Source of the DNA: Thalia democratica | Taxonomy: Eukaryota | Assembly (NCBI GenBank): GCA_965202585.1 | Contig: OZ241831.1 | Location: 17,484,001 to 17,548,000 of the forward strand | Reading direction: 5' to 3' | Length of the DNA: 64,000 bases | Part shown: positions 1,099 to 33,500 of the stretch, piece after piece | Layout: each line of letters starts with the position of its first letter | Position numbering within the stretch: position 1 is the first letter of the stretch | Translations under genes and position numbers: made by a program | Notes under the pieces: generated by a model | What the model was told of the DNA's origin: nothing | What the model saw: only the letters and a program-made list of their open reading frames with translations | Database searches by the model: none

Positions 1099-1594
1099 AA
1101 TGTAATTTCCGTTTTTATTTTGGTTAAATTAGTTTTATAAAGTTTTAGAATTCAAAAAAAAGTATATTTAATTGGGCACTTTCGACCTAATATTTGAAAT
1201 GAAGAACTAGAAGTTTTGAAAAGTAACTTGATGATTCAAACTTCAAAAAAAAAACATGATTAAGCGACTAGAGCGGTAAAATGTTTATGAAGTTAAAAGG
1301 AACAAGTTTTAATTTACAATAAAAGAATGGGTCCAATAAATTTAAATACAAAACTTATAAACAAGTTTAAGAAGATATACGTAATAAGTCTTTAATTTTC
1401 ATCTTGAAGCTTGAAATTTTTAACATTTTCAAAAAGTTAGTCAAACAGGAAATAACTGATAAAAGTAAATTTTATAATCAGAGGCATAAGTTTTGTAGAT
1501 CATTTGATATATTTGAACACCAATATTCAACATACTGCTGGTTTTTCGTTTACCAACAAGTTAAGCTCATAGTTGTAAATTTGAATAATTTCAG

Positions 1595-1662
1595 ACATGC
1601 AGCAAGGAAGTACATTGCCACCTCAGTACGATCCGACACAACAGCCACCCGCTTACAAATAA
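1595..1662 (+). CDS. Probable terminal coding exon (xMQQGSTLPPQYDPTQQPPAYK*) of a gene whose upstream exons were not identified
   Basis: Acceptor aatttcag at 1587-1594, a locally GC-rich stretch, two PPxY motifs, TAA at 1660-1662 and aataaa downstream. An in-frame stop at 1582 means it must be spliced. Confidence 0.5.
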
Positions 1663-4600
1663 ATGCATGTCGTTATTTTTTATTAAGAACTACAACTGAT
1701 CTTTCCGTAATTCAAGCTGCAATCAATTTTTTTTTGTATTTTTTTGGCCGTTTTTACTCAAAACTTCTTTCTGTGATAAATAAAATCTATGTGATTGACA
1801 ATAGCTTTCTTTGCATGATTAAACGTTTTAATAGTTGATTGTTATATTAGATACGTCATATAGTTTAGTTGTTTTTATAAGCTGCGGAAATTTTCTTTTA
1901 GTTATAAAATAAAAAGCAAAACCGAATACAAAATCAACTACTTAGCAATTATACAATTTACACGTATCTTTTCGTTAATGGTTCAAACTTTATTCAAAGT
2001 ATTTTTCTTTTATTTTAAATATGTTTTAAGTTTGACTTAAATTAAATGTTATGAAAGAGATATTATAATCATTTAAGAATAGCAGCTGTTTTGTAACAGC
2101 TCAAAAAATTTTTTTTTACAAACTGGATTTAACACTTTAAACTTGTTTACAAAATCTAACAACAAAAATAGTTATTGCCTGTTATACACTCTTGCAGTTT
2201 TAAAACTTATCAAGTTTACTAAAATTAAAAAAAAAATGTTTTAACCAACTTTTATAACTGTACATTAGTTCTAGTCGACAAACTGTTGGTGTAATGAAGA
2301 GTAAAATTTTGCTTTAAAAACAAAAAGAAAAGTTTTTGTGCTACAGACTTACAATTAAGCTCATAAATCTATAATTATTAGAACTTTTTTGGTCTTATTT
2401 ATATTAATTACTATGTTTAATTTAAAAATATGCTGCTCGCAAGAAACTTTTTTTGGGAAATTGATCCGCGACTTTAAAAATGCTTTTTACCCCTGATCCT
2501 AACCATAAATAATGGCAAAGTTTTAAAATTCTCCAGAGTTGAATATCTATCTACATAATGTCATACTGCTTATAATTATCTTTAAGCTTTTTTACTTAAC
2601 TTTATCCCGTAACTAACGTTTTTCACTATTGAAAAAATGTTGGTATTGCTTTAAAAGTTTTCATAAACAAGTCTAAAACTTATCATGCTTTTTTCAGGAC
2701 AGCTGTTTTAAAAAAGTAATTCATTTACAAAAAGTTAGTTTTAATTTATACTTATCCTTAATCAGAATTTTATTATATTAAATGTTTTTTACTCCTAATA
2801 AAAAATTAAAATGTTCCAAGTTTATTCAGGACAACCTATAGTAAAAAACATGCAATTTTATTAGGCTTATTGATAAGTATTTCAACATCTAAACCTTATA
2901 ATCTACTTTACCATAAAAAATGCAGTTTTAGTCAAAAACCTTAAGTAGCTTAAATAACTATTTACGCATAATTTCTTAATATTTTAAGTTAAAACTTAAA
3001 AACTGAGAGTTGAGTTTGTAATTTGAACTTTATCTTACAAAAATTTTTGTAATGGGTAATATAGTTTTTGTATCAAGTAGTCTGAAATAAGTTTTAGCTG
3101 ATAAAAAGAACAAATTTTTTTAGAAAACTTGAGGATCTCACTACTTTTAATTTTGGTTGATATAACACTTATAAAGTTATATGTGACCTGCACTTTATTT
3201 ATTTAACGATAAAAGAAAAGCGCTAAAAATATTAGTCTAAGGACCTGGTGTAAGTAATAACCTTTTGGTTATTGAGTCTCACATGCTTTTACAAGCTAAT
3301 AAAATATAATTTCTAAAGTTTGAAGTTTAAAACCTCAACAAACAAGACAAACGATAAAAAGAAAACTGAAGTTGAAATGCTGTAAAACTTGAAACAATCA
3401 TTAAAAAAAGTTACTTTCTTTCAAATTAGGTATAGTTTAAGAAAATTCATTTAAGTTAATGTTATCCAGGTAACGTATGACATTAAGTTATTGCGTGATG
3501 TTTAAACTTTATTTGGCGTAGTTATCTGTCATGTTAAAAGCAATTTAAAAGAAACATTTTCGTTTGAAAATTAGTGCTGCTCTTTTTTCAAGTAACTATG
3601 GTAGTAAATGCATAACAAAGTCGTAGTTTTATTCTTATAAAAATTACTAAACTTAAAATGCATGTTTGACGCTTTTTAAGAAGTAAGAAAAACTTGTTTT
3701 TGTAAGACAAGGCGTAGATTATCGGTGCTTATATAATCAGGTTTTAAGTGAATTGTTAAAACTTATAAGTATAAACCAGGGTTCCCAAACCCATTTTAAT
3801 AATATCCACCTTGGCAAAAAATTGAAAACAATCACCCCCTTTTACTAAATAACTTCACTCTGATTTTTAGTTACCAATTTACTTATTAGATACCTCACTT
3901 ATTATTGCCCCCAGATAGCTAAAATCACCCCTTAAGTGTTAACCTTTTTACTTTTTTAAATTGAAAACTGTCAGTAATTTTTTTTTAGTGAGTTAAGATT
4001 AGCAACAATTTTTTTAATGATTAAAGACATTAAAACAAAACTGTTAGCTATTAAATTTTATTTTAATCCTTATATTACTACTATTTCTAATATACATCGT
4101 CATTGTTTTACAACCGGCCATATCTAAACATTTATTCCCACATTGTCAATGTCGACACTAAAACTGTTTACTTTTCTTAACTTTAGTCATTCTCATTATC
4201 ATCCAATTCTTAACTTTTTTTACATTTGAAGAAATTCTTTTTTTTACTGTTTTCTTCTGTCTCGCACCATAACACTCTAAAAATTTGGAGCTTTTAGAGC
4301 CTGATGGCCGGCAATTTTCAGAGTCTGAAAAATTGTAATTTGTGTGAAGATCTGTATGATAGTTGATGTTTATAGGTAAAGTTACAAGCAGCAGTTTTGA
4401 TTTAAAGTTTCAAATGATTCACTTAAACACTATTAAAGTTTTTTTTAAGTGTAAAGGTGTTAAATTATGAATTTTTTTAAAACTATTGTTTATTACTTAT
4501 TTTAAGTTGTTAAGTCTTACTTTAAAATAATGTCTACTTTTAATTGTAAATGTGAGGATTTTTTAAACAAAAGTAGCAGCTTGTTCAATAAGCTCTTTTT

Positions 4601-4959
4601 TTTTAATTAGTTTTTGTTATTATTATTAATTAGTAATTAAAAAAAAATGTTTCTAAATACTTGTTGGTTTTTTAATTCTTTTGCTTTAAAACTATATTTT
4701 CTATATACATATATTTTTTTAAATTTCCTGAAATACATATTAGTCCATAAATTCATTGGCATTTTCAATAAATAATTTCATAAAGTTTTCTTTTTAAGAC
4801 TGCACTAATTAAAAATAAATATCGATGTTCCAAAAAGATTTTGAAAATATTTTTTTTTAGAAATATACATTACTAAAATTATTTATTAATTTTTAAATAA
4901 ATGTGCCGTTTAAGCAATAATATCTTTAGTTATTTAGTATAAAAACTGTTAGGTATAAC

Positions 4960-7900
4960 TTAAATGTTACCTGATTTTTCCTTAATATTAGTAGTGCTTT
5001 CAAGCTTTTCTCCATTTGAACAAACATCTAAAATTTCATTTTTCTCTGTTACATTTTCATAGTAAACATTTTCTTCGTAGCTACCTTCTACGTTTTGATC
5101 AATATTCTCTTTTTCTTTTTTCTCACAGCTCTCTACCTCACTCCCAGCAATGCTCTCTTCTTTATCATCACAACTCTCTACCTCATTCTCACTAACATCC
5201 TTCTCATCACAAATCTCTACCTCAATCTCACCGATGTTCTCTTCTTCTTCATAACAGCTCTCTACTTCACTCTCACCGATGCTCTTTTCTTCATAACAAC
5301 TCTCTTCTTTAATCTCAACGATGTTCTCTTCCTCTTCATCACAGCTATCTTCCTCAATCTCACCGATTTTCTCTTCATCACAGCTCTCTACCTGATTTTC
5401 ACCGATGTTGTCTTCTTCTTCATCACAGCTCTCTTCCTCAATCTCACCGATGTTCTCTTCCTCTTCATCACAACTCTCTTTCTCAATCTCACCGATGTTT
5501 TCTTCCTCTTCTTCACAGCTCTCTACCTCAATCTCACCGATGTTTTCTTCCTCTTCATCACAGCTCTCTTCCTCACTCTCACCGATGTTCTCTTCTTCTT
5601 CATCACAACTCTCTTCCTCAATCTCACCGATGTTCTCTTCCTCTTCATCACAACTCTCTTTCTCAATCTCACCGATGTTTTCTTCCTCTTCATCACAGCT
5701 CTCTACCTCAATCTCACCGATGTTTTCTTCCTCTTCATCACAGCTCTCTACCTCAATCTCACCGATGTTCTCTTCTTCTTTATCACAACTCTCTTCCTCA
5801 GTCTCACCGATGTTTTCTTCCTCTTCATCACAGCTATCTACCTGATTTTCACCGATGTTGTCTTCTTCTTCATCACAGCTCTCTTCCTCAATCTCACCGA
5901 TGTTCTCTTTCTCTTCATCACAACTCTCTTCCTCACTCTCACCGATGTTCTCTTCTTCTTCATCACAACTCTCTTCCTCAATCTCACCGATGTTCTCTTC
6001 CTCTTCATCACAACTCTCTTTCTCAATCTCACCGATGTTTTCTTCCTCTTCATCACAGCTCTCTACCTCAATCTCACCGATGTTCTCTTCTTCTTCATCA
6101 CAACTCTCTTCCTCAATCTCACCGATGTTCTCTTCCTCTTCATCACAAATCTCTTCCTCAATCTCACCGATGTTCTCTTTTTCTTCATAACAACTTTCAC
6201 TAATATTATTTTGTTCTTCATCACAACTTTCACTATTATTATCTTTTTCTTCAACACAACTCTCTACCTCAATCTCACCGATGTTCTCTTCTTCTTCATC
6301 ACAACTCTCTTCCTCAATCTCACCGATGTTCTCTTCCTCTTCATCACAAATCTCTTCCTCAATCTCACCGATGTTCTCTTTTTCTTCATAACAACTTTCA
6401 CTAATATTATTTTGTTCTTCATCACAACTTTCACTATTATTATCTTTTTCTTCAACACAACTCTCTACCTCATTCTCACCGATGATCTCTTCTTCTTCGT
6501 CACAACTCTCTACCTCATTCTCACCGAAGTTAATTTCATCACAACTCTCTACCTTACTTCCACTAATATTCTCTTCTTCTTCAACACAAATCTCTACCTC
6601 ATTCTCACCGATGTTCTCTTCCTCTTCATTATAACTCTCTACCTCACTCTCATCGATGTTCTCTTCATCACAGCTCTCTACCTGACTTTCACCGATGTTG
6701 TCTTCATCTTCATCACAGCTTTCTTCTTCACTCTCACCGATGTTCTCTTCTTCTTCATCACAACTCTCTTCCTCAATCTCACCGATGTTTTCTTCCTCTT
6801 CATCACAGTTCTCTACCTGATTTTCACCGATGTTGTCTTCTTCATCACAACTCTCTACCTCATTCTGACCGATTTTCTCTTCATTACAACTCTCTACCTC
6901 ATTCTCACCGATTTTCTCTTTCTCTTCATTACAGCTCTCTACCTCACTCTCACGGATTTTATCTTCCTCTTCATCACAACTTTTTAGTTCACTCTCACCA
7001 ATATTCACTCGTTTACTTTCTTCACTATTACGAAATCTCTCTTCTTTTGTGTCCTCTTTATCTTCAATGTTCTTTAATTCCTTTATGCATACACACACAA
7101 TAATAATACTCCAACGTAATATTTTTCGTATTACTATAATTAATACAGTAAACCTGCAAAATTTTAAGATTAATAAAAGGTTGAAGTCTAAAGTTTAGTT
7201 AATGAAATAAAGATCATTAAAGCACTTTAGATTTTTATACGCCCAGTGTTTGACAAACTATTAGTTAATATTTTTTCATAACATCGCTATTATACTAAAA
7301 AATAATGATTACCGGATCCTAAAATACTTATTCGTATCCCGCCGGTTCCTAATTTAAAAATGTGATCTGGATCTACCCGAATCCTAGTTTTAAAATAAGA
7401 TTCGAATCCGGTAGATCACTTGAAGCTTTTTGGATTATACTCAATTATTTACCATAACTTTGATGAAATTTAAAGCTGTTCAGAAAATATTAAATTAAAA
7501 GTGGTTAGGACGTGAAATATACAAGGTAATATTAAGAGCAAACAGTTTAAAGTTAGAAACGAATGTAAGTTAGTATAATGCCAAAAAAGCTATAGATTAA
7601 AAGTAATAGTCTGAAGCTAAAAATATCTCAATACAAAATTTAATTGGACAATTCATTACCAAAACAATGTTTCACTCGCTTAAACTTAATCAAACGAGAT
7701 CATCAGTTGAATAAAATCTGTAAAAACTTCTAAAATAACATGCAAGAAGACATTAGGCTATACTTTTAAAAAAACTAAATAAAAATATAAATAAAACCTA
7801 TAGTGTAAAGTTATTATTATAGGAAAACCATAATGTTATTTGGTTATTTTACCTTAAATAAAAATATCTAGAAATATCTAATGAGTTATCACATGCTTAT

Positions 7901-28140: not shown

Positions 28141-29703
28141 TTTGGTAGTTTACTTATATAAATACTGTTTAAAATAATATTGAATTAAAAGAAAGAAATT
28201 TAATAATTATCAGCAAACTTTGAATATTGCAGCTCATATTTTTTTATGATTATGAGTATTAAAAATATTACAATATAAATGTATAACTTTTAAACAAAAG
28301 AACCTAAACTATTTATATAAAATCAATTGAATAAATTTTAACAGGTTTATTTATTAAATTAAACAATGTTCAAAGGTAAGTAAATTTAATTTCCGTATAT
28401 ACACTGAGAATTTCATGAAATTTTTTTATTAGATTTAAAACTATAACAACAAAAATATTTTTTGTATAAAAAAAACTTTATAAAAATTTGACACAGAATT
28501 GAGTTTGAAAACTTTTAAGGACTTAATTTTCAAAAACAAACTGTAAGTACAGACTTAAAAACAAATTATTTATATACAAAGTAAGTTAATAACAACATAC
28601 ACTGATTTAAAATAGTAAACTGTATATATACATACGTTTATAATTAGTAATTAACAACACATCACTTATATTTCTGTTAAAAAAAGTGTTGTTTTAAAAC
28701 ATTATGTGTTACAATAATACTTAAAAATATTCTTTTAAGCTAGCGATAAGAGATTTTTTTTGAACTTGTAATGATAGTTATACTTTTTAATAAAAAAATA
28801 ATAATTTTTGGCTGGGGAGGTAACCTTACCATTTTTTTTTGAAGATTGTGAAAAATTGGATTGATATATCTATTTATTTTAAGTGTTTTTGAACTAAATT
28901 TTAAAGACTATTTGAAGGTTATAAAAACAAAATCAACTTTTAAAGAATATATTTAATTATTAGCTCAGTCATTACAAGTTGACTAAAACTAGATAAGTTT
29001 AGAACAGAACAGATTAGAAAACTGACATTAGGGTGTATATTCTGCTTTTTTAAGACTTTAATTTCCTTTAAAAAATTAAAACACTATTTTCTTTTATAAA
29101 AAGAGCTTCGTAAATCAAATATTTTGTGTTTTATACACGCATTATACTTTTTTTCCAGAAAGTTCTAATTTCAAAGTAGACATTTCTAAATTTTCATAAG
29201 TTAGAGAATATGTGAAATTAAATTGTACTTTAGTATAAAAAATTGCAATATTTTAGTTTATATCATTTTTCTTAATTTATAATCTAAATTACTTTGTTTT
29301 ACAATAATCTTTTCTATCTATTAAATCATAGAAAACTATTGCACATTTATCAATCAAGTAATGCTTCAAAATATTAAAACTATAAAATAATCTAAGGTAT
29401 CTTCAAATAAATATCTAAAAAAAAATATCAGACAAATCTAAAAACTAATTAACATAAAAAAAAGAGGTTAATTTACAAATAAAAACGATTTTAACATTAT
29501 AAAAACATAAAAAAATAGAATTAAAAACCTTAATAAGAATATTTTTATTTTTGTTTCATAAAAAACTCTGGAGTAAGTTGGGCAAATAAATATATTTTGC
29601 AAAAAAACGTATTAAAAACTGTATCAGACAAAAATATTGCATAAAAACATCATTAAAAAGGCAATCAAAGCAAAGAACAGTGATCAATAATATTTTGTAT
29701 ATA

Positions 29704-30594
29704 TTAAAAGTCAGTGATTAACACAAAAAGCTGATAAACATAATGAACAATAAGTTGATAAAGCGAAAAATAAAGTTGCTGATGAAGTATTATTGGCCAG
29801 GGTAGCCAAAGCTTGTACAGTCTAAACTCCAGTAACGAGTGCACTAGTAAATGCTCTCTACTTTTCTTCTGCCACTTTTCATCAGAAATTGCTTTTTTGA
29901 CGCAGCCAGCCTGCTGATATGAACAACTCCTGCAATGGGGAAGTAACACGCCAGAATTCAGTTCTTTAGACTTGTTTATTGCAAACGGCGGTTGATGATC
30001 AGCAAAATAATCAGCTATGGGCATCTTAGAGCTTGTTAACTTGCAAAGTAAGCGATGAAAATTGTTTACAAGGCGAGAGTGTCTCCTACCACAAGAGTGG
30101 CATCCAAACTTGTACCCGATGTACTGGGTCAGCAATCTCTGCTTGTTAGTAATGGGAACGTCGTAGTTGTCTTGAGGAATGCTTTCAACTGCAAAAGCTC
30201 CCTGATGTAGTAAGCTGCTAGGTAATGTTTTTCTAAACGTTCTTGCTGTTAGTAGAAAATAAATTACTGAAACAATCACAGAATAAAAAACAGACTCTAA
30301 AGGAATAGTAGAGTTTTCATCACCAAAGCTTTTTCTAGACTCAACAACTACCAGTGATGATAATAGACTCATCCACACAACAGAAAAGAAGCCTATAAGG
30401 CTAGCATATTTTTGATTGCAGGATAATTTAAATAGTTTGAAAAATATCTGCAGCAAAGTGAGTAAAAAAATGAAACATAGAGCGCCATGAATGCTGGCTT
30501 CTACATTGTGTTTGATGTTAAGTTCTAATTGTCTTTTCTTTTCAGATTTGTCCCAGTTAAAAAACATTCTACTCAGGAAAGCTGGCATTGACAT
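29704..30594 (-). CDS. Intronless 296-aa multi-pass membrane protein with a CxxC-DH-CxxC (HNH/His-Me-finger-like) zinc domain
   Basis: Open 891-nt ORF with acceptor-like ttttgcag just before the ATG. Three N-terminal hydrophobic segments plus a hydrophobic C-terminus. Motifs LPSSLLHQGAFAVESIP, GCHSCG, FADHQPP and LLPHCRSCSYQQAG. Confidence 0.8.
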   Translation of the reverse strand: MSMPAFLSRMFFNWDKSEKKRQLELNIKHNVEASIHGALCFIFLLTLLQIFFKLFKLSCNQKYASLIGFFSVVWMSLLSSLVVVESRKSFGDENSTIPLESVFYSVIVSVIYFLLTARTFRKTLPSSLLHQGAFAVESIPQDNYDVPITNKQRLLTQYIGYKFGCHSCGRRHSRLVNNFHRLLCKLTSSKMPIADYFADHQPPFAINKSKELNSGVLLPHCRSCSYQQAGCVKKAISDEKWQKKSREHLLVHSLLEFRLYKLWLPWPIILHQQLYFSLYQLIVHYVYQLFVLITDF

Positions 30595-33500
30595 ACTGCA
30601 AAAGTTTTTGTTTAAGTGTTGCTTCTAAAAAAAAAGTTAAATGTAAATCAAATACATTTCTAACAAATAAAATTATTTCTGAATTTTTTAAAGATAAAAG
30701 CTATGTTTGTACTAAAATACTTTAATAATAACCAAATTTAAAATATCTATTAGTAACATCACTTAGCTATGCTTAAAAAGCTGCAAAAACTCTGTAAAAA
30801 ATTTATCTAAAATTATCAATGTAGAAAAAACTTTTTTTTTAAACATTAATTGAAAATATTTAAAATATAAGTATTTTGGCTTAAATAATCATGTTTCAAT
30901 AAAACTTAATTACTAAATATACTACACATAATAGTTTATTAATATAAAAGAAAATTGTAGCTACAAGCTGCTCACAACTACTCTTTTAAAAAACTTTTAT
31001 TTGAATTTGCAACTTCAAAAAAAGTTTAAACTAATTAATACAAAAAGAATATAGCTGCTAAATTATTTTTCTCATTAAAAGTGACTATTTAAAACAAAAA
31101 AAAATTGCAGTTAGGACTTTTTTTGAAGCTTTGTATACACACAAAAAATATTTTAAATAATATAAATAAAATACATAATTTCTCTGTATATGAAATAATT
31201 AAATATCTTAAACAAATTATACATTTTGTATAAAAATAGAATACATAAAAATTATTTCAACGTTTAGATTATGTAGCACTTTAAAGTCTAAATAGTACAA
31301 GTTTACTTTCTGCTATTTCCAGCAAATTCATAGAAGATTTAATTTATTATATGCTAATGAAATGTAACACTAAAAAAATCAAAATATCTTTTTTTAATCA
31401 ACTAAATAGTATGTTTTAAAGCTTACGACTGGCACTGTTTTCAGTTTTTTAGTTCTATTTATTTAGATGACACAAGTTTGAATAAAAAAAAATTAAGAAA
31501 CCAAATTCAAAATGACTCAAAATATTTTTTTTTTAATACATTGATATAAAGTAAACAAACTATGTGATTATATTTTTCTTTTTTTATAAAAAATATAACA
31601 AGAACTTGACAAAAAATAAAACTAAGAAAACTTTAATTATACTTTTATTATAAGTGTTACTCAAATTATTCTTTAGTTTAAAAAAAAAAATGCTGACTTC
31701 ATTAAACTAAAAAATTATAAAAGTAAGATTGAAGTTTTGACACAAAAAATATGCAAAAACAAATAATAAATATAAAACCTTTGATTGAAAACAAAACAAA
31801 TTTTCTTTAAAAAAACATGTGTGATATGAAATATAATTACCAGTTGTTTTAGAATAACTAAACTAAGTAGATAAGTAATTATACTTATAGCATTAAATCT
31901 ATAAAATAATATAAACTTAAACAGATTTGTATATTTTAAATAAAACTAAGTAATTTTAAGTAAACATTATCACCATTAAATTCATAACAACAAATAAACG
32001 CACTTGTAGTATTTCCTTGTGATACAGTCTACTTTGTTAACAAGCTTCTCATGATAGCTTTATTACATCATTTGATTTATTTTAATTTTAGAAAAAAACA
32101 GCTATACCTACATCAAAAATAAATTTGATAACTAAAAAAAAGCTTTATACTACTAAATTAAATGATGAAGTAAGATTATATAACATTACTAAACGCGTTT
32201 AGCTTAACTTTAGAGAAACAATTAGTTTATTTTTTATAATTACTTATTCTTATATATCTATAAAAAATATTTCTTAAAAGATATAGTTATATTACATAAG
32301 AACTCATATTTTAGGATAGCATTTTTTAAATATAAATTTATCTGTCTGCTGAGTTTATTGAATAACATAAATTAAAAGTTTAAAAAATATGTTTTCTTTT
32401 TAAATATATCAAGCATCAAAAGGTTAATTCATTTAAATAACAATAACTTTTAACTAGAAAAAAATAAGTTATGTAAGGAAAAACTATTAAAAAATTTACC
32501 TTAAGAAGTATTTTAGGGATAAATAATCACATATTTCAATAAAATAATCATTATTTACAAAAACTACTACTTAGCCTCACTTATAAACTAATCAATGCAT
32601 AGTATACAAAAATAGCTCTTAGATTTAAAATTGCCAATTATAGCTTTGTGACCAGATCAGTTAAGAAAAGTTTCATAAATTTTCTAAATACATTAGTTTT
32701 GTATTAAAAATAATATTTTTAATTTTTACTTTCAATATTTTCTTCTACAATAAAGTTATTCTATGTGACTTTTGCTAATATAATTTGTTTTAACTATAAA
32801 GCATGTTGTTTGTGAGGTTTTTAAATATGTTGTTTATTATTTCATTTTCTGTATAAAACAATTTAAAAAAAAAGTTAAAACTTAAAAAAATTAAATAGTT
32901 GCCACTCTTTGATTGAACATAAAACTATACTAGTAATTAGAAATCACCCTTAGTTTATGGGTAAAATATATAAAAAATATTATACAAAAATAAGCAGATA
33001 AATAATTTATAACTACTTTGTGCTTAAGGTATTGAATTTTTGGTATACTTACGATTCCCACCTGTGCACGACTCCCAGACAAAAGTAATATGTTTTTTTT
33101 CTACTTTTTATGAGAATTATCTTTTTATTTTTAATCTTTTATTTTAATATCACTATTACCCCTAACCCTTAGTTGGTAAGCAATTCTTGGATTAATTGAG
33201 TAGAAATTGTGTGGGTGAGGAATAATCGCAGGTTGGAACTGAGCAGTTCAGAATTTTTTACTATTATTTAGTTGCAGGGTGTGTGAGGAAACATAATATT
33301 AAAAGTAATATTTAAAATTACACATATTGATGAAATTACTCAAACTTTTATGTTAACTGGATGTCAATCATTAATAAAAATTATTGGCTGTAGCTTATTG
33401 CAACTAGTGTCATTTGAGATAAAAACTGGACTAAAACTTTAATCAATTTTATACAAAAAATTATTTTGATTCTAATTATTTGAAAAAATGTGAAAAATTT

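Follow-up and report, generated by a model that had tools for sequence, protein, structure and literature searches.

The NGO1392-like, or Tox-SuFu-Nuc, clade of HNH/EndoVII toxin domains was described by Zhang, Iyer and Aravind in 2011 (PMC3113570) and by Zhang et al. in 2012 (PMC3482391). The entry for the clade in PMC3482391 gives CxxC, DH, CxxC, Q as its signature, Imm-SuFu, Imm13, Imm21, Imm33 and Imm38 as its immunity proteins, and apicomplexa, choanoflagellida, metazoa, stramenopiles and viridiplantae as its eukaryotic range. The passage on eukaryotes in PMC3113570 places the nuclease in animals, plants, stramenopiles and apicomplexans, where a toxin role was deemed unlikely and the protein was thought to be perhaps a DNA-repair enzyme. 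Jamet et al. (2015) only noted that NGO1392 has a domain with an HNH/EndoVII fold, and in the literature we found no functional or experimental study of the clade, nor is there a Pfam model for it. Our other point of comparison is the Gme HNH endonuclease Gmet_0936, with a solved structure (PDB 4h9d), for which residue roles are taken from PMC3765158 and in which the four-cysteine (Cys4) zinc site is structural. Here we describe a gene of Thalia democratica, an intact open reading frame (ORF) in the ORF list, 296 amino acids from ATG to TAA, at 29704-30594 on the minus strand of a 64-kb window (the whole stretch of 64,000 nucleotides that was analysed; all coordinates are positions in it).

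That the family has eukaryotic members was already reported in 2011-2012, and the Thalia gene adds a member to a known, uncharacterised group. We consider it fairly probable, from the conserved residues and the predicted fold, that the product is an HNH nuclease, metal-dependent and stabilised by zinc, which transmembrane (TM) helices and a C-terminal tail hold at a membrane, and that it belongs to an old eukaryotic family. The soluble part is, judged by profile homology, a descendant of a bacterial toxin nuclease. With regard to the NGO1392-like clade, the Thalia protein shares the signature and has profile homology to Rhs/PT-HINT tips beside Imm21 or Imm33 genes, and the eukaryotic range that we find agrees with that given in the relevant passages of PMC3113570 and PMC3482391. 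It differs from the bacterial toxins of the clade in that the domain sits between three TM helices and a tail in a protein of about 300 residues, not at a toxin tip and with no immunity gene, and chordate versions differ further in carrying an insert of 26-32 residues. The membrane architecture is not mentioned in the text on the eukaryotic versions in those two papers, where they are given one sentence.

Architecture and fold of the protein

The features of the protein are as follows.

30235-30486, minus strand: three TM helices, residues 37-55, 66-84 and 97-120, a region peculiar to the eukaryotic family (hydropathy; AlphaFold; aligns across the eukaryotic family).
29884-30222, minus strand: NGO1392-like (Tox-SuFu-Nuc) HNH/EndoVII domain, residues 125-237 (hhalign against bacterial tips; 4h9d; AFDB and Atlas; model).
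30088-30105, minus strand: GCHSCG zinc knuckle, residues 164-169 (Cys165, His166, Cys168), aligning with Cys38-His39-x-Cys41-Gly42 of 4h9d.
30004-30087, minus strand: 28-residue basic insert from the zinc knuckle to strand 1, with a helix at 174-186 (linker lengths in relatives; predicted local distance difference test, pLDDT, 95-97).
29986-30003, minus strand: ADHQPP, residues 198-203, with Asp199-His200, the predicted catalytic pair, at the end of strand 1, aligning with Asp53-His54 of 4h9d.
29911-29940, minus strand: PHCRSCSYQQ, with the second zinc pair Cys221/Cys224, Ser225 and Gln228, at the helix start (4h9d alignment; 105-sequence alignment).
29707-29847, minus strand: hydrophobic or amphipathic C-terminal tail, residues 250-296, with an H..LR.Y..WLPWP motif (conservation; ratio of non-synonymous to synonymous substitution, dN/dS, 0.03-0.07; model).

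A sequence-only reading of the window had proposed three N-terminal TM-like helices, a string of GCHSCG, ADHQPP and PHCRSCS motifs and a hydrophobic tail. Hydropathy and AlphaFold agree on the helices, which in the model cover residues 5-54, 64-89 and 99-117, with pLDDT 96-98 for most of the TM part and falling to 86 in the loop ahead of the third helix. The three motifs are all present (PHCRSCS being residues 219-225, 29920-29940), but the spacers are of 28 and 15 residues and not 29 and 14. The tail, the last 47 residues, is indeed hydrophobic or amphipathic, but is below the TM hydropathy threshold used; the model has helices in it at 266-271 and 276-295. The fusion of the domain to a membrane anchor, also proposed in that reading, is real and is common to relatives in other eukaryotes.

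The AlphaFold model made on a 105-sequence alignment has pLDDT 93 and a predicted template modelling score (pTM) of 0.84; from three close sequences only, pLDDT was 38. Between the TM helices and strand 1 it has a strand at 139-141, a helix at 150-163, the zinc knuckle and the helix at 174-186, and there follows a predicted beta-beta-alpha core, in which strand 196-201 ends in Asp-His and is followed by strand 215-221 and by helix 222-237, which starts from the second CxxC. A structure search of AFDB clusters put the eukaryotic family on top (E 1e-11 to 1e-8), followed by an RHS core protein (E 4e-5), a pair of entries named 'HNH endonuclease' (E about 1e-3, root mean square deviation 3.0-3.2) and an intein-C toxin, and the search of Atlas gave two PF01844 clusters (TM-score 0.55). 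The wide VIA structure search was dominated by helical membrane proteins, with an HNH match at rank 49, and the whole model gave no match with Foldseek against PDB or Swiss-Prot models. The domain profile matched 4h9d at E 0.0075. Searches of Pfam, NCBIfam and PDB sequences with the single protein gave no match; the protein matched no Pfam HNH family at E<=10, nor was any such family enriched among 45 domain sequences, in which only NinG came up (3 of 45 sequences, E 0.03). The 4h9d alignment, the structure matches and the homology to toxin tips described below together support the earlier assignment to the zinc-binding HNH/His-Me finger nucleases.

Relationship to bacterial toxin tips

An exhaustive hidden Markov model search of 1.84 billion representatives with a 3-sequence profile gave 164 proteins at E<=1e-3, of which 34 were at E<=1e-10. 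In the same match list are seven bacterial polymorphic-toxin tips (P0096, P0097, P0099, P0102, P0112, P0134 and P0145; E 1.6e-5 to 5.6e-4). They directly follow Rhs core or PT-HINT sequence and have the ending ...PGPFA..SIPARGPERNFT..ER..I..IG...GCHTCG-x12-PDHQPP-x15-LYPHCxxCSxxQGGEV. The sequence-only reading had pointed to a pattern of this kind in the tips of Rhs/CDI proteins, and it is thus real. In hhalign the 45 eukaryotic domains match five bacterial tips with a probability of 99.9% and E 8e-34 over 91 columns, and the match begins at the PGAFA segment directly after the third TM helix.

A scan of bacterial genomes queried with the five tips gave 64 loci, mainly in Proteobacteria, Myxococcota, Bacteroidota, Acidobacteriota and Bacillota, in which the domain is the C-terminal end of proteins of up to 1761 amino acids; since the scan worked from five tips, this bacterial sample is a single sub-clade. 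The ORF just downstream of the tip is Imm21 in 17 of the 64 loci and Imm33-like in 13, and Imm-SuFu is absent from the downstream ORFs of this sample. We found no bacterial version with a TM anchor: two of the 401 genomes of a Bacillota sample had any match, and neither had the architecture. The clade signature is found in the Thalia protein at Cys165/Cys168, Asp199-His200, Cys221/Cys224 and Gln228, and as signature, immunity context and phyletic range all fit, we place the domain in the NGO1392-like clade, a placement made on these grounds and not by comparison with NGO1392 (MafB of N. gonorrhoeae) itself. Bacterial members of the clade serve as the killing tips of polymorphic toxins of the Rhs, PT-HINT and MafB types. 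The 296-residue protein has no Rhs or HINT region and only the TM helices besides domain and tail, and among the adjacent ORFs in the window there is none that is immunity-like. With no trafficking or repeat region, no pre-toxin domain and no adjacent immunity gene, this is not a working polymorphic toxin system.

Some features of the bacterial loci deserve mention in their own right. Of the downstream ORFs 32 have no Pfam match and another 2 match only unrelated families; many of those with no Pfam match are of about 120-145 amino acids and from metagenome-assembled genomes of alphaproteobacteria (for example L022:5287-5646 and L047:5279-5638), and they may represent one or more undescribed immunity families for the toxin clade. 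In Streptococcus timonensis (L061) and S. infantis (L062) the tips, at about 4899-5234, are degenerate remnants in which the first Gly-Cys is gone and the frame ends ahead of the second CxxC; as the Imm21 gene is still downstream, these look like orphan immunity loci.

Vertebrates keep SuFu, which is descended from an immunity family of the toxin clade, and our searches for the nuclease family brought up no member from a vertebrate. We considered whether SuFu and the nuclease might still be paired; the published ranges show no strict co-occurrence, since PMC3482391 gives apicomplexans and stramenopiles for the nuclease and not for SuFu.

The PGAFA segment bears on what the substrate may be. 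It is part of a conserved LPSxLxxPGAFA segment immediately C-terminal of the third TM helix, the anchor is always kept in the family, and the pTM of the model suggests that the domain is rigidly packed on the TM bundle and tail, all of which would suit an active phosphodiesterase that is kept flush with the bilayer and acts on a membrane-proximal phosphodiester (a lipid head group, or a nucleotide- or protein-linked adduct) and not on free nucleic acid. However the soluble bacterial tips carry PGAFA too, so that it belongs to the toxin domain and is no adaptation to the membrane, and the domain is strongly basic, with a net charge of +9 in the Thalia protein and a family median of +9. All characterised His-Me finger enzymes known to us act on nucleic acids, inactive nuclease-like domains aside (PMC5714182), and we regard such a phosphodiesterase as quite improbable.

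The eukaryotic family

Most members are of 250-360 amino acids and their alignment spans TM helices, domain and tail. In the search hits taken with a few close homologues and cluster members, CxxCG...DHxPP...CxxC is complete in 139 of 157 proteins, and those off the full pattern are mostly fragments or have DHxP-x. Such recurrence puts the motifs far beyond coincidence. The named chordate and echinoderm members are from the ascidians Ciona intestinalis and Clavelina lepadiformis, the amphioxus Branchiostoma and the starfish Asterias, and other named members are from the sponge Oscarella lobularis, the choanoflagellate Stephanoeca, the green alga Botryococcus, the foraminifer Bolivina and Plasmodium chabaudi; every member with a named source is annotated as uncharacterised. 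Atlas clusters extend the range to Cnidaria, diatoms and chlorophytes, and a word-indexed protein search with the family alignment gave 9 proteins. Ten longer family members have no fused domains that hint at function.

Invariant in the 105-sequence alignment are Gly132, Gly164, Cys165, His166, Cys168, Gly169, Asp199, His200, Pro202, Pro203, Cys221, Cys224 and Gln228, but as the 105 members were picked by a pattern requiring CxxCG...DHxPP...CxxC, only Gly132, Gly164, His166 and Gln228 count as unbiased invariants. The tail residues His252, Arg258 and Pro265 are conserved across the family. The linker from zinc knuckle to Asp-His is of 26-32 residues in the Thalia protein, Ciona, Clavelina and Branchiostoma, but shortens to 7-10 residues in most of the remaining members, Asterias and Oscarella among them.

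Individual members show some peculiarities. P0040 (250 amino acids), which is in the same 18-member clade as the Thalia protein in the tree discussed below, has kept the TM helices, CHxCG, second CxxC and tail and has lost Asp-His-x-Pro-Pro, and resembles a naturally inactivated copy of the scaffold. P0156, a 584-residue isoform from Oscarella lobularis, is longer by about 230 residues at its N-terminus, which weakly match NNH1, a NACHT N-terminal helical domain (E 8e-7, 29.7 bits, although no one stretch passes alone), and this extension could be either an annotation fusion or real. P0138 (326 amino acids) and P0149 (232 amino acids) each have two tandem NGO1392-like domains and are without TM helices, Rhs or HINT; P0138 falls with the bacterial tips in the tree. 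The Branchiostoma orthologue (L069, 2001-2801) is a single exon within the span of a Cpn60_TCP1 gene (1594-4801) on the same strand, and is presumably nested in an intron.

The active site

The residues of the Thalia protein align with those of Gmet_0936 as follows.

Cys165, Cys168, Cys221 and Cys224: Cys38, Cys41, Cys73 and Cys76 of 4h9d, zinc ligands in 4h9d.
Asp199-His200: Asp53-His54 of 4h9d, active site in 4h9d.
Ser225: Asn77 of 4h9d, active site in 4h9d.
Gln228: Lys80 of 4h9d, with no stated role in 4h9d.

The two proteins have in common the CHxCG knuckle, the Asp-His that ends strand 1 and P-x-C-x-x-C at the helix start. They differ in that Asn77 of the Gme protein is replaced by Ser, Asn68 has no counterpart and Lys80 is replaced by the invariant Gln, and the sequence match, as its E value shows, is marginal; Gmet_0936 is also a small soluble bacterial protein, unlike the membrane-anchored Thalia protein. 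Asn68 is aligned with position 216, where the Thalia protein has Val and the family Arg or Lys. The Thalia protein thus lacks the central Asn of canonical HNH enzymes as well as the Asn or His ligand that comes right after their second CxxC. The HNH domain of ZRANB3 (PDB 5mkw) is more distant in kind, being soluble and nuclear, on an SNF2 ATPase and with a different active-site signature, and we detected no sequence-level relationship to it.

The sequence-only reading saw that Ser stands in place of the usual metal-ligating Asn and took activity to be uncertain on this account. The mapping is right, but Ser225 is present in 89 of 105 family members and in bacterial tips, and Gln228 in all 105. 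Ser is therefore what the clade normally has, in the bacterial toxins too, and with Gln228 never varying, Ser225 is no sign of decay. Gln228, which lies one helical turn on, probably stands in as metal ligand.

The gene is under strong purifying selection. Measured against two orthologues from marine assemblies (93% and 84% protein identity), dN/dS is 0.11 for the whole sequence, 0.04-0.06 for the domain, 0.03-0.07 for the tail and 0.19-0.31 for the TM region.

These data bear on the possibility that the protein is a pseudo-nuclease, in which a zinc-stabilised treble-clef scaffold serves at the membrane as tether, sensor or adaptor, binding either a partner protein or nucleic acid, and does not cleave. 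The replacement of the metal-ligating Asn fits such a role, as does the loss of the family Gln215 (present in 71 of 105 members, Gly in the Thalia protein and its nearest relatives) in the clade of the Thalia protein, a clade in which P0040 lacks Asp-His with the rest kept. Other toxin-derived HNH domains of animals, such as the teneurin C-terminus, are also reported to be without active sites, in Table 2 of PMC3482391 and in PMC3417536. However Asp199-His200, His166 and Gln228 are kept in all of the aligned members, and dN/dS of the catalytic domain is the lowest in the protein bar the tail. The combination of Ser225 and Gln228 is also that of bacterial tips paired with immunity genes, a pairing which implies that tips with Ser and Gln are toxic. 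We therefore think a pseudo-nuclease unlikely, though it is the alternative that we take most seriously.

Gene structure and origin

The gene itself has the following features.

29704-30594, minus strand: coding sequence (CDS), a single exon of 296 codons plus stop (ORF list; colinear RNA contigs; dN/dS against two orthologues; single copy).
32004-32097, minus strand: non-coding 5' exon in the 5' untranslated region (5'UTR), with its true 5' end undefined (metatranscriptome contig positions 1-94, with zero mismatches, then on to 30595).
30596-32003, minus strand: 5'UTR intron of 1408 nt, GT..AG (skipped by the RNA contig).
29544-29703, minus strand: tentative 3'UTR with AATAAA at 29544-29549 (RNA contig extending to 29585; signal scan).

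The gene is transcribed, and is spliced in its 5'UTR although the CDS is one exon. The ORF is covered, with an identity of about 98%, by contigs of two marine metatranscriptome runs from one sample, and one of 1001 nt is colinear with 29689-30595 and then jumps to 32004-32097, across an intron with donor GTGCGT and acceptor TTTTGCAG, which ends one base ahead of the ATG. The upstream-exon frame running into the ATG has stop codons, so that the CDS has no N-terminal extension. The AATAAA found by the signal scan is 155 nt beyond the stop codon. The statement of the sequence-only reading that there are no introns is thus correct for the CDS but not for the gene, and the gene, whose lack of expression would have told against that reading, is expressed.

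The gene is present as a single copy in the 802-Mb genome, and the neighbouring genes are interrupted eukaryotic genes. GC content is 37% in the CDS, 22% in the flanks and about 25% in the whole window. In two runs hundreds of partial DNA contigs stack at 28150-29660 and 30570-32500, with a depth of 100-600, and there are few or none in the middle of the ORF; the gene is flanked by repeated elements.

In a maximum-likelihood tree of 176 domain sequences and 114 columns, the whole sample of bacterial tips is separated from the eukaryotic proteins by a single branch, with a Shimodaira-Hasegawa-like approximate likelihood ratio test (SH-aLRT) value of 80. The Thalia protein is in an 18-member clade with ascidian sequences (SH-aLRT 96), and its nearest named relatives are those of ascidians (Ciona and Clavelina), followed by amphioxus and starfish. 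The CDS is a single exon also in Ciona, Branchiostoma and Oscarella, and the Asterias gene has introns; the intronless CDS is thus a habit of the family and not a mark of recent transfer. A single origin of the eukaryotic family is compatible with the tree but not proven by it, since the tree was made from a short alignment and its bacterial sequences represent one sub-clade.

The gene is native and not a recent transfer. The sequence-only reading had raised horizontal acquisition as a possibility, and as a recent or lineage-specific event this is contradicted by the spliced 5'UTR intron, the ascidian relatives, the single-exon relatives and the one-branch split from bacteria; on the phyletic pattern, which it had put as bacterial toxin tips versus scattered eukaryotes, both Rhs/PT-HINT tips and a wide range of eukaryotic members were found. 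An intron-free toxin gene newly arrived, or bacterial contamination, might be suspected from the uninterrupted CDS, its higher GC content than that of the flanks and the bacterial toxin type of the domain. Besides the points already given, such an origin is opposed by the orthologues at 93% and 84% identity in marine samples, by a layout of TM helices, domain and tail common to choanoflagellate, sponge, algal, foraminiferal and apicomplexan proteins, and by the lack of an Rhs/HINT region and of an adjacent immunity gene, and we hold it to be extremely improbable.

Proposed function

We suggest the following mechanism for the membrane-held HNH nuclease that we favour. The three N-terminal TM helices and the hydrophobic tail would hold the domain of about 110 residues at the membrane, and Cys165, Cys168, Cys221 and Cys224 would coordinate a structural zinc. 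Water would be activated by His200, at the end of strand 1, and Asp199 and the helix residue Gln228, perhaps with Ser225, would hold a catalytic Mg2+ or Mn2+. The basic surface would bind nucleic acid, in chordates helped by the extra basic helix, and the membrane anchor would limit cleavage to nucleic acid reaching one membrane face. With cleavage limited by the anchor in this way, the former toxin would be a compartment-restricted housekeeping or clearance nuclease.

EXOG and TREX1 are membrane-anchored eukaryotic nucleases that are likewise compartment-restricted by their anchors. However their anchors, in the form of one TM helix or of a tail anchor, and also the TREX1 fold, are unrelated to the Thalia protein, and we know of no homology between either protein and it. 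As for the membrane concerned, the N-terminus ahead of the first TM helix is short (family median 22 residues), which would argue against import by a cleavable presequence and for the endomembrane system or the outer membrane of an organelle; a positive-inside count across the four loops is ambiguous as to orientation. A membrane anchor suits the DNA-repair idea of 2011 poorly, and points to compartment-restricted cleavage of nucleic acid.

More tentatively, and with rather more doubt than confidence, we propose that these proteins of about 300 residues may be an unrecognised class of integral-membrane HNH nucleases, found in choanoflagellates, green algae, stramenopiles, foraminifera and apicomplexans as well as in animals other than the main model species. 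In such a class a toxin tip would have been domesticated once, early in eukaryotes, with the three-TM anchor and tail retained, would break down nucleic acid, for example DNA of foreign, cytosolic or organellar origin, on one face of the membrane, and in chordates would have gained a basic helix that alters substrate binding.

Significance

A bacterial killing domain has here been kept, with its catalytic residues intact and under strong constraint, in a multi-pass membrane protein across many eukaryotic lineages, and the published functional hint, in the treatments of the clade cited above, is limited to one sentence of 2011 on DNA repair. There are orthologues in tractable organisms, namely Ciona, Plasmodium, green algae and diatoms, so that function is directly testable, and for the bacterial side, too, an activity, if measured, would be the first for the NGO1392-like toxin clade.
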